Assembly (NCBI GenBank): GCA_002269645.1
Contig: NIVC01004181.1
Span: 1-56,359, forward strand
Reading direction: 5' to 3'
Source of the DNA: Macrostomum lignano
Taxonomy: Eukaryota
DNA: 56,359 nt
Position numbers and translations under genes: made by a program
The notes under the pieces: model-generated
What the model was told of the DNA's origin: nothing
Databases searched by the model: none
Seen by the model: only the letters and a program-made list of their open reading frames with translations
Part shown: positions 9,346 to 41,190 of the stretch, piece by piece
Numbering within the stretch: the first letter of the stretch is position 1
Layout of the letters: the number at the start of each line of letters is the position of its first letter

Positions 9346-10119
9346 AGGGACTAGAATAGATCACAGATATAAAATGAACTTCTACTATATCAGTATTAAT
9401 ATTACTAGAACTGAAACCTTTAATAAAATTTAAAACAAGTCTATTACATTAGTTAGGGAATCCAGTGAGATTTTAAAAGTTTTTTTGTATTTTATTTCAT
9501 TTGATAAATCTCACTTGCCTGAGTAAAAATACACTTTACCACTGTTACTGTTACAGGTGTAATTGTGCCTAGTTACTAATGCCACCAAGTTGTACTAGGG
9601 CAAAACTTCTCTCTATTAAGACTCCACTAAATTGTACAAAGTTTATTATTTCTAACCCTAGGACTAGGAATCCTATTAATTATACCTATATATAGGCCTA
9701 CGTATATGGGCTACTGTCAGTACAAGTGGTTTCAGTCCATTTCGGCGAAAGCCCACTTCGGCGAAGGCCACTTCGGCGAAAGACAATTTCGGAGAATCCA
9801 CTTCGGCGAATGCAATGACCACTTTGGCGAACGATATAATATAGTATATTTAACTTTATATAATTAAATTTTAATAGTATTTAATGACTACAACTAAAAA
9901 TTAAGTGCTCAAAATTACTACAACTGCAAATTTTGTTTTACTTTCTCATCCCAGAATACTTAGTGAGTCAGCTCATATGTTCAAATTTATATTCCCTAAT
10001 TCATATTGAATTTCAATTGTATTCCATAATCTTATATTTAGCTCATCCGTAAGATACTATAGGCAATGGCTAGAGTTCATGTCAAGATAGTAGGTATATA
10101 TAACGTAAGAAAAAACAAA

Positions 10120-11827
10120 CCATTGATCATCCTCATGGCCCATGATGAAAGCGTGGATGGTGTACAGCTGAACGAAGGGCTTATTTACCACGTGGAAAGT
10201 CTGTCTGTCTGTCTGTCTGTCTGTCTGCGTACAATTTTCAGAGAGAGAGAGAGAGAGAGAGAGAGAGAGGAGAGAGCAGAGATAAATGAGAAGAGATACC
10301 TCGTAAGAGAGAGAGAATAAAAAAGAGAGAAGAGATATAAGAGACGAAAGAAAAGGGTGCAGAGAGGAAGAGAGTGGAGAGAGGAGAGGAAAGAGTTGAG
10401 AGAAGAGAGTAGAGAGAAATGAAATGAGATAAAAGAGGAGAAAGGAAATGAGAGAGCAGAGACGAGAGAAGAAGGGAGAGAGGGGAGAATAGAGAAGAAA
10501 GAAAACTATGGACTCTATTCCATGCCGGCCGCAGACATACATGCGCAACTTTGGGAATCACCCGGCCGTTTCTATTAGCAACACACACATGTAAGTCGCT
10601 ATTGGCTGAGAGCAGTCACGTGACTACTATTCCGTCCAATAGCGACTTACATGTGTGTGTTGCCAATAGAAACGGCCGAGTGAATCCCAAGGTTGCGCCC
10701 AAGCATGCGGCCGCTCAACCAATGGAGAGTGGAGAAGGAAGAGAGAGAAGAGTGAGAAGAGAGAGAAAGAAAAATAAAAAGAGAAAAAATAGAGGAGAGA
10801 GAAGAGGGAAAAGAGAAAAGAGGAGAGAGGATAGTTCAGAGATAAAAGAAAGATTAGAGAGGAGAGAGGATGGAGAATAAAAGGATCGAGAGGAGAGACG
10901 AGAGAGAGGAGAGTAAATAGAGTAGAGGTAAGAGAGAGAGAGGAGCGGAGAGAGTACAGAGAGGATAGGGTTTCTAGTATAATAAAGTGCACGATAATAT
11001 ACCTGAAACTGCTGCAGCACATCAAGCGTCTTTTCCTTTGCAATCTGAACTGCAGATAGAAATGGATTCTTCTGTGCACGATCCACAATGCGGCGCTTCA
11101 ACCGAGCTCGCTCCTCAGGCCTGTGGAGAGGCAAATGACAGTGCAGAACGGAACGTTTGCTGAAGGCTTCTCCGCGCTGCACAACTGTTGCATTGCAAGT
11201 TTGGTGTCCATTGCGAAGTGCACACCGCCAATAGATAGACTGACCTATTTTTTTGCTTTTTACAAACATGTACTGGCCATCAACGACAAGAATGTCGCGA
11301 TTCTTGGTCGAGCCGCTAGACACAATTTGAAACTCTGGAGCACGAGCGATATTCTCATTCTCGGTGTCAACCAAGCTCTCTTCCGGAGCCGTGGGCGACA
11401 TGGCTACAGCTGGAGGCGGCAATGTGGGTGCCATGGCTACAGCTGAAGGCGGCGATGTGGGCGCCATGGCTGCAGGTAGAGGCGGCGATGTGGGTGCCAT
11501 GGCTGCAGGTAGAGGCAGCGATGTGGGTGCCATGGCTGCAGGTAGAGGCGGCGATGTGGGTGCCATGGCTGCAGGTAGAGGTGGCGATGTGGGTGCCATG
11601 GCTGCAGGTAGAGGCGGCGATGTCGGTGCAGATGGCGCAGTCAGCAGCATGTTACAAGCTGAACACCTCCACTGGAACACATCCAGTGAGGCAAGTTGGC
11701 GGTACTCAGCTTGGGAAATGCCATTGCCGCAACATCTGTGTTGCCAACAAAGACAATGGTCGCATTCTAATGCTTGCTGTCATCCTGTCACAATATTTGC
11801 GCAGACAAGACAGTTATCCGCCATCAT
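10120..11827 (-). pseudogene. PHD-finger + FLYWCH + MULE transposase pseudogene
   Basis: ATG at 11827: MMADNCLVCANIVTG*QQALECDHCLCWQHRCCGNGISQAEYRQLASLDVFQWRCSAC (PHD, in-frame TGA at 11780-11782), then a 33-bp AMAPTSPPLPA repeat, then FLYWCH-like FQIVSS...LVVDGQYMF...YWRC...C...HCH. A separate fragment TFHVVNKPFVQLYTIHAF (10200-~10145) matches the MULE motif DGTF..P..F.QLY.IH. Confidence 0.8.
10543..10698. repeat. Inverted repeat: 63-bp arms, 30-nt loop with a central 12-bp palindrome
   Basis: Arms 10543-10605 and 10636-10698 (4 mismatches); loop contains AGTCACGTGACT at 10614-10625. Confidence 0.9.
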
Positions 11828-12342
11828 GTAGTTGTCACTATTCACGTAGCTAGGAAACAATTACTGTTCTTAGTTCTAAATCATTCCAAGACCGTACACA
11901 ATACGCGTATATATATATGCCAAATCCTCCTCTACTATAGCTATCCTTCTTTCTAATGCATGGTACGTACATGAATGAGAAAATTTTCCTGCAAAGAAGC
12001 ACGTAATTGTAGCAATCCTATGGTAAGGTAAAATTCTTGTGCAAAGAAGCACAAATGTACATTTCATTGCATGATTTCGTCAGGCCAAATTCCTTCGATA
12101 ATAAGCCTGTGAGTCTAAGCCAATACAGCATGTTTAATTTTGCACATTTTTATGCGCTATATAGCACCCCACAGAGCAGGCCGAGCAGGCCGCGAAAAGG
12201 CTACATTTGATAGTCTTTTAATACGGTACGTCAATCAGCACCTTCCCCAAAATGTGGCGATTATGTCACATAAAATCTCTTCGCTATTAGTTAAGGCACT
12301 TTGGCATATATAGGTTTTATTATATGTATTTGTGTACATGTA

Positions 12343-38161: not shown

Positions 38162-38420
38162 GGGCCTTTTCATATTACCAATTCCAGAACCAGAATCGGT
38201 TCGGAATTCCAAGAAAAACAGCAGTATAACTATTAAACTCTGTTAATATTTGACTGCCTTAACAACCTAACTTAGCACAATTTTTCACTTTCTTCTTGGC
38301 GATTGTCATTCAATAATAAAAATTTATAGCACGTATCTCCTTCTAGTTATGGAGACAAAAAGTTATACTTCACAAATTGGTTCTGGTTCTGGAACCAGAG
38401 CAAGCAATATGAAAAGGCCC
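38162..38420. mobile_element. 259-bp MITE, PIF/Harbinger-like
   Basis: TIR GGGCCTTTTCATATT / AATATGAAAAGGCCC, subterminal TTCCAGAACCAGAA, 3-bp TSD AGT at 38159-38161 and 38421-38423. Confidence 0.7.
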
Positions 38421-41190
38421 AGTGACAAGGATAAATCTTACCGGAAAGTCTGGCACGAAAACTATACGAGGTGTGGTTTCCTGGAAAGATGTATGTAGCA
38501 CTTAGTCTTAGGTCTTAGGTAGTGGTCTTCTAAAAGAAAGAGAAAGAAAGAAAGAAAGATTTAAAAGAAAAAAGCCTGTCGTTTCGCCTATCAAAAAATT
38601 ATGGCTAACGCCTAATAGCCCATTAAATTATTACTGATCAGACTTAAGGAAGTTGATGACTAGGCCTATTACTACGCCATATGAAAAACAGTGATTTTCA
38701 TAACTCAGACTTTACTCAGTAAGTGAGTCAGTCATTTACATACATGCAACATATATATACATATTCGTATATCAAAGGAATAAGCCTACTTTTACTCATT
38801 TTCATTTATATTATCATTTAATTTTTATCTTGATTACTGGCCTTCTTGACCTCTGGCTCTGGCTATTGCCTATTGTAGGCCTATTACATAGTATAAATGT
38901 ATAATTAAGGCTTAGGCAGTTAGGCCTAGTCCTATTCAGTATCTTATCTTTTCATTGTGATAGAGAGGCGATAAATTGGTAAGTGATCTATTTTAGTTTG
39001 TTTCTAGGTTGTGTACTAGTCATGATATGATTGTTAATAATATTAGTTAATCATATTTTTAGCTATTAATTTATATCTATGAATATTTGCAAGGTAGATT
39101 TAAATTAATTAGGCCTAGGCCCTATTATTATCAACTAATCAATATAATAAGTCTATCAGAATTTAGTTAAAATAGGTGAAAAACCATATAACCATATAAA
39201 TAGCAAAATGGTTATTTTATGGTAAAAAACAAATATCATCTAAATTTAGTAATTAATATTAAGTGTAAATATTAAAGCCTAGTTTTTTAATTTTAGAAGA
39301 ATTATATGCTTTTGAAGTGGGGCAGAGAAAAGAATTTAAAATTTTAAATTGGTCTATTGTTAGCTGACACCAGAAAATGGGCAATTTTAACTTTTAAATT
39401 CCGTCTTCATTATCTTGGCACTTGCAAAGCTGGAAAATTTCACTGAATTATTTGAATTATTTTTCTTTTAGAATACTGCTGGGTCCTCAATTCCAGGGAA
39501 GGGTAGTCATAATTGTGTCAAGCAGTCTTAAGCAGGCATAGTCATTCAGATTGTAGGCTCAATGGTCTTGACACAATAATTTTATTGTTAGCTGATTTGC
39601 TTAACTGATTTCTTTCAGTAGATTAGTGCTACTACCACCATAATTTTGTAATATTATAGAATATTGAGATCTCAGAGCTCATTTGGAGTTGAGATTAATT
39701 CAATTGTTTCATATTAAGCAAATAACTTAAGATAAACCACTAAAGGCTTTGATTAATTAATGAACTTATTTGTAAAACAGGTGTTATGTTTGTTAAGTAT
39801 TAGATTTTTGCCAACAATTTTATTGCTAATGAACAAGAGTTGCCATGGTGATGCTGGGTGCAGAGTAAGAGTAACTGGTTAAGCTTCTAAAGTGTAAGCA
39901 AATTAACTCCTTAAACTAGAACAAGGAAAAGTATTAGAAACTAAACACTAGACTTAAACTAACTAAACAAACAAGTAAACAAAGGGGGAGGAGAAGGAAA
40001 AGAAAAGCAAGCAAGAGCAAGCGCATAAACAAGTTTGAGGCCCAAACTGGCCACATAAATATTAAAAACTGGGCAGTCCGCAGCAGATAGGGAAGAAAGG
40101 GCAAAGGATGGGGCAGCAGTCAGAAACAATAGAAACACATAGAAAACACATGCAGATAAAACAAAAATTATTAATGCCAGACAATGGGGCAAAGGAAAGG
40201 TCAATATATCATATCAGTTTTGAAATAGGCCTAGTTCATAGTTGCAAGTATGTACTATATGTATTATGTAATGCATATGCTATATGCCAATGTATGCTGA
40301 TGGACTTTTATTGCATACAAAAATATATCAAAACAAAATTATAAATGATGATCTTTATATACCAAGCTATATACCAAAGGGTATGCCAGGCCCCTTTATA
40401 TGCCAATTTGTATACCAATTGTGTGGTATAGGGCCTATACCAGATATCTTTATACTTGTATGCTAGAAAATTCTAATATATATATATATATATATATTAT
40501 CTCGAGTCTGGCATGTAGGAATTTTGTGCCTTATAGGCATAGTTGATTGTATGCTATATATGGGAAGTTAGATTATATCCTAACTATAAATGTCAATGCC
40601 AATGGACTTGAAAGGTCCATTGATAGATAGTGTCAATATGCAATGATTTTGTCTATTGTCTTTTTATTTGCTAGTAGGTCCTGGCTAGACAAAATAACTT
40701 TTTTGTAATATACAAATAAGATGCAAATCTTATCATATTATATATTTATCTCTCAATTCTATATTTAATTTATATATTTAATTATTTAATTTTATGTATA
40801 TTATCTCTCAATTTTATATATAATACTTTTAATATTTTCATATTATGCACATTCAAACAAACTTTATAAAAATTAAAAACAAGCTTTCAGGGGCATATGA
40901 AAGGGGAATGGGGGATTCATTTTCCTTCCCTTGAGATGGCCTATCCCCCTCCCCCCAAAGAAAATTTCTGGATCTGGGCCTAGCTATATTGTAATTTGTA
41001 ACCATATATTAGATCATTGTAGTAACCATATTGGCTATCTTTATCAAATTTATTTAAGTATTGATTATAGTACATAAAAGTAAAGGTTGTCAAATTATAG
41101 TGTATTGAGTTAGCTTGAACAACAATAAACATAGGCCTATCTATATTGAAAAAAATGAAATTTGCTCACAGGTAGAGCTGCGGCTTATTG

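Follow-up and report, generated by a model that had tools for sequence, protein, structure and literature searches.

A palindrome clustered in CpG-poor domains of Macrostomum lignano is a 6-bp indel at TA and may be a transposon excision scar

The palindrome TAGGCCTA occurs 15 times in a contig of the flatworm Macrostomum lignano (NIVC01004181.1, assembly GCA_002269645.1; all 56,359 bp were analyzed and are called the window here) and is absent outside CpG-poor, AT-rich stretches. Comparison with other copies of the locus showed that TAGGCCTA is not an evolved word: it is a TA that acquired GGCC plus a second TA. We put at roughly 0.55 the probability that these units are the footprints of a putative TA-targeting cut-and-paste element, accumulating in unique and probably germline-methylated domains.

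A preliminary description of this DNA, made from its letters, had listed 15 palindromes and reported none elsewhere; the positions and the absence were both exact. It had also put the chance expectation within the domains at well under one copy, and calculation gave 0.06 from base composition and 0.17 from a first-order Markov model. Dinucleotide-preserving shuffles of the window gave a mean of 0.70 copies and a maximum of 3, versus the 15 observed. Within the domains the hexamer GGCCTA is over-represented 37-fold, and GGCC occurs 30 times, of which 15 are perfect TAGGCCTA and the remainder mostly one-off variants. The tetramer CTAG, also described as abundant there, is enriched 2.5-fold. Spacing between the copies is irregular (10 bp to 1.4 kb). 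The two CpG-depleted domains originally described are real and sharply bounded. The picture is refined in two respects, in that the copy at 9693 belongs to a stretch of its own, 357 bp long (domain 0), and the copy at 38661 lies at a ragged edge. The domains are as follows.

9345 to 9700: domain 0, 357 bp, CpG-free and AT-rich, delimited by CpG gaps and positions.
12881 to 17459: domain 1, 4.6 kb, unique and non-coding, GC 0.31, CpG observed/expected ratio (o/e) 0.08.
38610 to 41180: domain 2, 2.6 kb, unique and non-coding, GC 0.30, CpG o/e 0.10; the left edge is approximate.

Domains 0 and 1 contain these copies and length variants:

9693 to 9700: TAGGCCTA, in the separate CpG-free stretch, domain 0.
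13117 to 13124: TAGGCCTA, domain 1.
13148 to 13155: TAGGCCTA, domain 1.
13788 to 13795: TAGGCCTA, domain 1.
13926 to 13933: TAGGCCTA, domain 1.
14890 to 14897: TAGGCCTA, domain 1.
15231 to 15248: two copies with GC between them (TAGGCCTA-GC-TAGGCCTA), domain 1.
16681 to 16688: TAGGCCTA, domain 1.
13772 to 13780: 9-mer variant TAGGCCCTA, domain 1.
12951 and 14401: 7-mer TAGCCTA, domain 1.
15916 and 16020: 7-mer TAGGCTA, domain 1.

The nature of the motif was read from other copies of the locus. The M. lignano genome is that of a recent hidden tetraploid (PMC5704211), and the DEG/ENaC channel open reading frame (ORF) of the window (47124-48761) matches the M. lignano protein BOX15_Mlig031432g1 with 99% identity. 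Two further copies of the locus were used: L002, an independent contig about 98-99% identical to the window, and L001, about 96-98% identical. A fourth contig, L003 (NIVC01000524.1), is the same locus assembled twice, window 42911-51909 corresponding to L003 1-9000 with 2 mismatches and 16 one-base homopolymer indels over 9 kb. These differences indicate that one-base indels in the assembly are unreliable and that multi-base indels are reliable. L003 was therefore counted with the window, leaving three distinct locus copies. At window position 47197 (GAAAG, versus GAAG in L003) the extra base splits the DEG/ENaC gene into two frames; the disagreement identifies this apparent frameshift as an assembly error and not a pseudogene. 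Domain 2 is present in both L001 and L002, and the between-copy motif comparison covers this domain; a protein search with the first exon of the adenosylhomocysteinase-like (AHCYL) gene recovered no homeolog of domain 1. The sites in domain 2 compare as follows.

38661 to 38668: TAGGCCTA in the window and L002, on the ragged left margin of domain 2, which still has a few CpGs; GATGAC-TAGGCCTA-TTAC versus GATGAC-TA-TTAC in L001.
38876 to 38883: TAGGCCTA in the window and L002; CTATTG-TAGGCCTA-TTAC versus CTATTG-TA-TTAC in L001.
38921 to 38928: TAGGCCTA, common to the window, L001 and L002.
About 39048: the reverse case, TA in the window versus TAGCCTA in L001.
39110 to 39124: compound TAGGCCTA-GGCCC-TA; TAGGCCTAGGCCCTA in the window and L002 versus TAGGCTA in L001, a compound of the same units.
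39116 to 39124: a further 9-mer variant.
40226 to 40233: TAGGCCTA, common to the window, L001 and L002.
40429 to 40437: 9-mer variant TAGGGCCTA.
41132 to 41139: TAGGCCTA in the window and L002; ACA-TAGGCCTA-TCT versus ACA-TA-TCT in L001.

Of the six domain 2 copies, three thus differ from plain TA by the presence or absence of exactly 6 bp (TA versus TA-GGCC-TA), and two (38921 and 40226) are present in L001 too. All six window copies are found in L002, which confirms that the differences are not assembly errors. A duplicated TA brackets the filler in all 15 copies, and the empty sites of L001 are a single TA. When all 3-12-bp indels between copies were inspected, those of TA..TA form carried just two kinds of filler, GGCC within domain 2 and CGAG/CTCG outside it. 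A three-base duplication (PIF/Harbinger TWA or Nuwa TNA) was rejected as the basis of the motif, one site fitting by coincidence and 38876 and 41132 failing. Note that the middle of domain 2 is unrelated between the copies (window 39314-40195, 882 bp, versus L001 2926-3288, 363 bp). The L001 region holds a 495-bp inverted-repeat structure, and independent insertions or replacement are both conceivable.

Two features of the window belong to the CGAG/CTCG class.

44184 to 44880: mariner-like miniature inverted-repeat transposable element (MITE), TA-CGAGGGTTGTCCC...GGGACAACCCTCG-TA, with inverted ends of about 200 nt.
33684 to 33692: TA-CGAGC-TA footprint, in the window only; L002 has plain TA.

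L001 holds three more footprints of this class, opposite window positions 36653, 44615 and 46104, and the TA-x-TA indels of the class between copies are TACGAGCGTA, TACTCGTA, TAGCTCGTA and TACGAGCTA. The filler matches the termini of the MITE (TA-CGAGGG...CCCTCG-TA), indicating that excision footprints of TA-x-TA architecture do arise at this locus. By this match of termini, the MITE family is the source of the CGAG/CTCG indels and serves as a positive control for excision footprints.

The GGCC class is tied to its domains by both composition and recent history. CpG is depleted about tenfold (about 90% lost) in the domains only. The borders are sharp, and the domain o/e of 0.08-0.10 at GC 0.30-0.31 compares with 0.77-1.00 in control stretches; an equally AT-rich control, 8000-9344 (GC 0.32), has CpG o/e 1.00. 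In the window the 25 non-domain 300-bp bins of GC<0.37 (CpG o/e 0.91) contain 729 TA and no TAGGCCTA, versus 819 TA and 15 TAGGCCTA in the domain bins (CpG o/e 0.11; Fisher p = 8e-5), and AT-richness alone therefore does not account for the clustering. The same held when the sample was extended to 152 kb of non-redundant sequence: AT-rich bins of CpG o/e <0.3 have 16 TAGGCCTA per 1419 TA, versus 2 per 3016 TA in AT-rich bins of CpG o/e >=0.5 (p = 9e-7). The preliminary description had reasoned that equal frequency in AT-matched, CpG-normal DNA would speak against it; per TA the motif is 17-fold rarer there. In the 1.6 kb of domain 2 that could be aligned, 4-5 GGCC-type events per 237 TA have occurred since the window and L001 split, versus none per 565 TA in 10 kb of aligned flanks (p = 0.002-0.007).

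An unrelated locus, L005, contains 12 perfect TAGGCCTA, 8 copies of the 9-mer variants and 6 of the 7-mers, most of them inside or bordering the two stretches of this locus that are AT-rich and CpG-poor, with about a third of the perfect copies in bins of CpG o/e >0.35. The compound TAGGCCTA-GGCCC-TA found at 39110 occurs twice in L005. Other loci sampled (L004, L006-8 and L009-10) have no such domain and no TAGGCCTA, not even in the 5 kb of L009 that combine a GC of 0.29 with normal CpG. Two side features of L005 were seen. Interstitial TTAGGG-type repeats (1-60 and 625-650) stand at the head of two copies of a diverged unit, about 600 bp long, within a stretch rich in the motif and poor in CpG. 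A non-autonomous hAT-like element (19834-20592; ends CAGGGTGCCGTCAAAA, 8-bp duplication AGGGGGCC, subterminal AAAATGGCCACAC repeats) sits within a cluster of GGCC-type scars.

The domains are neither genes nor repeats. No ORF of more than 94 aa was found in them, which rules out a coding or viral insert. The domains show no similarity to each other, nor to any other fetched DNA except their own homeologs, and the flanks of TAGGCCTA have no consensus past the 8-mer itself, so a shared repeat family was rejected as the source of the motif; this bears out the original remark that the copies belong to no obvious shared element and disposes of its proviso that the domains might be copies of one repeat family. 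Outside the domains the window is largely minisatellites and transposons. Domains 0 and 1 were formerly continuous and were split by a later insertion:

9705 to 12805: transposon, about 3.1 kb long and CpG-rich, with terminal inverted repeats of 104 nt (9728-9831 and 12673-12776) and a FLYWCH zinc-finger ORF.

The inverted ends of this transposon are built of a 16/31-bp subterminal repeat (CCACTTCGGCGAA...), and its ORF combines the FLYWCH zinc finger with a coding minisatellite of 33 bp; inspection showed no transposase domain. All three domains with a visible right edge stop at a plus-strand gene start (window 17383 and 41181, and L005 23360); the start in L005 is that of a called kinase gene and that at 17383 is exon-like by inspection. 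The two gene starts in the window are:

17383 to 17497, plus strand: exon-like segment, ttgcag/GATTCT...ATG...GGCGG/gtgagt; domain 1 ends here and CpG returns.
41194 to 42354, plus strand: coding region of P0050, a 386-aa protein without a Pfam family, starting 14 bases past domain 2.

Judging from the splice-site letters, domain 1 probably ends at a first exon (acceptor 17382/17383). The right end of domain 2 is an acceptor-like cacag just ahead of the P0050 gene.

Divergence between copies fits, on a small sample, a methylation-driven decay of CpG confined to the domains. Between the window and L001, CpG diverged at 6 of 20 sites (30%) in the domain versus 45 of 440 other G/C sites (10%; p = 0.016, on 20 unpolarized sites), whereas outside the domain the figures are 42 of 939 (4.5%) and 132 of 3761 (3.5%; p = 0.18). 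Other changes are elevated as well. G/C sites diverge about threefold more in domain 2 (taken as 38558-41180) than in the flanks (10% versus 3.5%) and A/T transversions are equal, indicating that G/C-to-A/T turnover is raised generally in domain 2, beyond CpG. M. lignano retains DNMT1 and DNMT3, and 5-methylcytosine (5mC) is present at a low level (PMC11292947, PMC9246332); the genomic methylation pattern is undescribed for any free-living flatworm (PMC9246332). Because both methyltransferases are kept, the loss of CpG is best explained by germline cytosine methylation, probably confined to the domains.

Tc1/mariner-type transposases leave 2-3 terminal nucleotides as 3' overhangs upon excision. 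An element of such chemistry with ends 5'-GGC...GCC-3' or GG...CC would duplicate TA upon insertion and upon excision would leave 2-3 terminal nucleotides as 3' overhangs on each flank. Two GGC overhangs could anneal through their self-complementary GC, and the filling of one base per strand would then give TAGGCCTA as the dominant product. Retention of a single end would give TAGGCTA or TAGCCTA, and a non-overlapping join with trimming would give TAGGGCCTA or TAGGCCCTA, as minor products. The 7- and 9-base length variants do co-occur with the 8-mer in the domains, in an assembly that contains one-base homopolymer errors. On the same scheme the original sequence at the double copy (15231-15248) would have been TAGCTA, each TA having been hit. 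The element would target, or its scars would persist in, kilobase-scale unique AT-rich non-coding stretches directly upstream of genes. Possible causes of such a preference are marked or methylated chromatin, germline accessibility upstream of genes, or relaxed constraint. We infer that the filler derives from transposon ends and that the direction of the indel is gain of a scar.

A rough rate can be attached to this scheme. If a substitution rate and an amount of domain-type DNA are assumed, the 4-5 events per 237 TA, set against a window-L001 divergence of 1.7-2.2% in the flanks and higher in domain 2, correspond to a per-TA rate that is at most about half the rate of substitution per base, for which only some hundredths of an excision would be needed per genome in each generation. 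A low-copy donor is expected far less than once in the approximately 15 kb of domain DNA, and its absence is thus weak evidence against the scheme.

Several points weigh against excision footprints. A search of about 260 kb of M. lignano sequence, in which a low-copy family would be expected at well below one copy, turned up no intact TA-GG...CC-TA element with inverted ends and thus no element whose termini match the residual nucleotides. Since that link to donor termini is lacking in this small sample, the motif is not classed as a proven member of the Tc1/mariner footprints. Tc1/mariner ends usually begin CAG or ACG, not GG. With three copies and no outgroup, the three insertions fit equally well as three precise deletions in L001. 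To our knowledge, a scar density of about one per 300-500 bp far exceeds that of any known transposon footprints. Perfect copies outnumber those with one mismatch (15 versus 9, about 4 of the 9 being expected by chance), which requires either a recent burst or a force keeping the copies perfect, and some of the 7- and 9-mer variants could be homopolymer errors of assembly. The comparison of CpG hypermutability rests on 20 CpG sites. Finally, four L005 motifs lie in a mildly CpG-depleted stretch (o/e about 0.65), so that scars and CpG loss are not strictly coupled.

Candidate donors were considered and rejected. A scan for TAGG...CCTA with inverted ends gave 44355-44706 as its sole strong match, a false lead internal to the CGAGG-type MITE ends, and the scan of L004 and L005 returned nothing. 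The hAT-like insert of L005 has an 8-bp duplication, not TA, and was excluded. So was the following MITE, the duplication of which is likewise not TA and which is therefore not the donor of the GGCC scars:

38163 to 38419: 257-bp MITE, in the window only and absent from L001 and L002; ends (G)GGCCTTTTCATATT, perfect over 14-15 nt; duplication AGT (or CAGTG).

Its presence in one locus copy only is evidence of very recent DNA-transposon activity.

Repair of breaks without any transposon is the first of the alternatives, and we consider it unlikely. Breaks would recur at TA in the domains, for example in fragile AT-rich or cruciform-prone DNA or as promoter-proximal meiotic breaks, and end joining would duplicate a 2-nt overhang and either extend both 3' ends by an invariant GG or copy in GGCC from a template. 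The absence of a donor from about 260 kb agrees with such a process, as do the limitation of events to one type of chromatin or sequence domain and the abutment of the domains on gene starts; the filler, a perfect palindrome consisting of a G-run and a C-run, is what would be expected if both ends were extended identically. We know of no end-joining pathway that puts a constant GG on both ends, and the MITE-matched TA-x-TA footprints of the same locus make a transposon the more economical source. A telomerase-type extension, suggested by the TTAGGG repeats of L005, was rejected, because it would add GGGTTA rather than GG and two G-rich tails cannot anneal.

Quite improbable, in our judgment, is a specialized form of the transposon scheme in which a still-active, low-copy TA-targeting element selectively enters germline-methylated, AT-rich gene-upstream domains or is excised almost totally, in the manner of the eliminated sequences of ciliates.

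Age might also separate the domains from their surroundings, and this we hold to be quite improbable too. If the domains were the oldest neutral DNA among young repeats, CpG decay and scars alike would have had longer to accumulate. The domains are indeed unique sequence in a window made up largely of minisatellites and transposons, and a CpG-rich transposon did insert into the former domain 0+1. However, since the split of the window from L001 the GGCC events have fallen in domain 2 and not in 10 kb of equally old flanks, so the restriction to domains is not just an effect of age. In addition, CpG appears to be hypermutable in the domain only, and introns and flanks of similar AT content retain normal CpG.

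Very unlikely as a full account is a function for the motif, for example as a site for a palindrome-binding dimeric protein that organizes or marks the domains, the copies being spread by some means and selection keeping them intact. Clustered binding sites of a chromatin protein, the alternative suggested in the preliminary description, are not needed to explain the motif. That perfect copies exceed those with one mismatch would follow from such a function (a recent burst explains it equally well), as would the strict clustering in a gene-adjacent class of domain at two independent loci. Yet 3 or 4 of the 6 sites in domain 2 are absent from another locus copy, indicating that individual sites are dispensable, and the spacing (10 bp to 1.4 kb) follows no rule. 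Selection moreover leaves the 6-bp insertion at TA unexplained, and would be an addition to a generating mechanism rather than a true rival of one.

The mechanism first proposed, by analogy with the repeat-induced point mutation (RIP) of fungi, was CpG decay followed by CpA-to-TpA change on both strands, turning CAGGCCTG into TAGGCCTA; it is hardly credible, for although the domains are AT-rich, CpG-poor and somewhat rich in TA and CTAG and the G/C sites of domain 2 diverge about threefold faster than those outside, the copies that could be compared differ by exact 6-bp indels with zero C/T substitution differences (which refutes a RIP-like origin for those copies), the precursor words are nearly absent from the domains (CAGGCCTG 0, CAGGCCTA 0, TAGGCCTG 1), CpA is not depleted (the RIP index (CpA+TpG)/(ApC+GpT) is 1.22-1.92 in the domain kilobases, RIP being at or below about 1.03), and the domains are single-copy rather than duplicated targets. 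The broader idea of a locus-restricted mutational process survives in the tenfold, domain-limited depletion of CpG and in the 30% versus 10% divergence of CpG and other G/C sites in domain 2.

Among known systems, the footprints of the Tc1/mariner (IS630-Tc1-mariner) elements are represented by the canonical Sleeping Beauty footprint TAC(A/T)GTA and those of Tc1, Tc3 and Mos1. The scars described here resemble these in the duplicated TA around a few constant nucleotides, in a palindromic unit attributable to inverted ends, in an apparent dominant product with minor ones (allowing for homopolymer errors of assembly), in presence or absence against an intact TA at the same site, and in the second example at the same locus with its donor identified. 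They differ in that the search for a donor found none, that GG/GGC would be unusual termini, that the fixed scars are very dense (as many as 2-4 per kb) and that they are limited to one class of domain instead of being scattered. Short TA-bounded or G+C-rich units in AT-rich DNA are also known as the TA-bounded internal eliminated sequences (IESs) of Paramecium and the mobile GC clusters of yeast mitochondrial DNA (30-50-bp elements), which are generally regarded as descendants of TA-targeting transposons or of small mobile palindromes. Unlike the 4-nt filler of this animal nuclear genome, these are removed precisely in the soma or are 30-50 bp in length.

The depletion of CpG has its own precedent in the germline-5mC mosaic of invertebrates, with which the locus shares kilobase domains of CpG o/e about 0.1 beside DNA of o/e about 0.9, the retention of DNMT1 and DNMT3, and apparently, on 20 unpolarized CpG sites, a divergence of CpG faster than that of other G/C inside the domain only. 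In contrast to that mosaic, the depleted units here are AT-rich, non-coding and gene-upstream rather than gene bodies, and the adjacent exons, introns, transposons and satellites retain their CpGs. Fungal RIP likewise gives locally AT-rich, CpG-poor DNA with sharp borders, whereas this locus has no duplicated targets and no CpA depletion, and its motif arises by insertion rather than transition.

Inverted ends that commonly start GG(G/C)C are found in the PHIS superfamily (PIF/Harbinger, ISL2EU, Spy, Pangu and Nuwa). The MITE at 38163-38419, which lies some 200 bp from domain 2 and has (G)GGCC ends and a duplication of AGT or CAGTG, is Pangu-like. PHIS duplications are TWA, AT, none, ANT, CWG or TNA, and never TA (PMC4482050). 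Literature searches on the motif returned just primers and unrelated sites, and they gave no description of footprint-dense domains. What is unusual here is the density of the scars, their restriction to one class of domain, and their coincidence with a CpG-depleted compartment in a flatworm.

An odd k-mer statistic thus becomes a concrete, testable event, TA to TA-GGCC-TA, which lends itself to genome-wide counts and could serve as a marker. Among flatworms, M. lignano is the principal model for transgenesis. Should the scars prove to be footprints, they would point to a highly mobile element with a strong preference for a chromatin or domain type, would inform how a repeat-rich genome is policed and might provide a tool for transgenesis. 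If no donor exists, the 6-bp insertion would be a repair signature without precedent. The sharply bounded, CpG-starved domains in turn predict where germline methylation acted, in a pattern unlike the usual gene-body methylation of invertebrates; were the quite improbable scheme of selective integration or elimination true, the TAGGCCTA scars would preserve in the sequence the history of a flatworm methylation compartment that lies outside gene bodies and had not been described before.

The remainder of the window contains several other features. Nested long inverted repeats at 8368-9093 (arms of 81-136 nt, 91-95% complementary) form a hairpin-like element of about 700 bp, which lies in AT-rich, CpG-normal DNA and is followed by a tRNA-like fragment (about 9300-9345) not called by ARAGORN. 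The adenosylhomocysteinase-like (AHCYL/IRBIT-type) gene has exons from about 24220 to 31463, and a tRNA-Arg(TCT) gene (29947-30021, Rfam 70 bits) lies within one of its introns. The contig ends in at least 4.6 kb of a 29-bp satellite (AAGAGAGAGAGAGAGAATTGAGGGAGAC; 51746-56359, also L003 9001-15848) with a GC skew of +0.85, an AT skew of +0.75 and zero CpG, and at least 12 other minisatellites (units of 18-51 bp) occupy much of the window.

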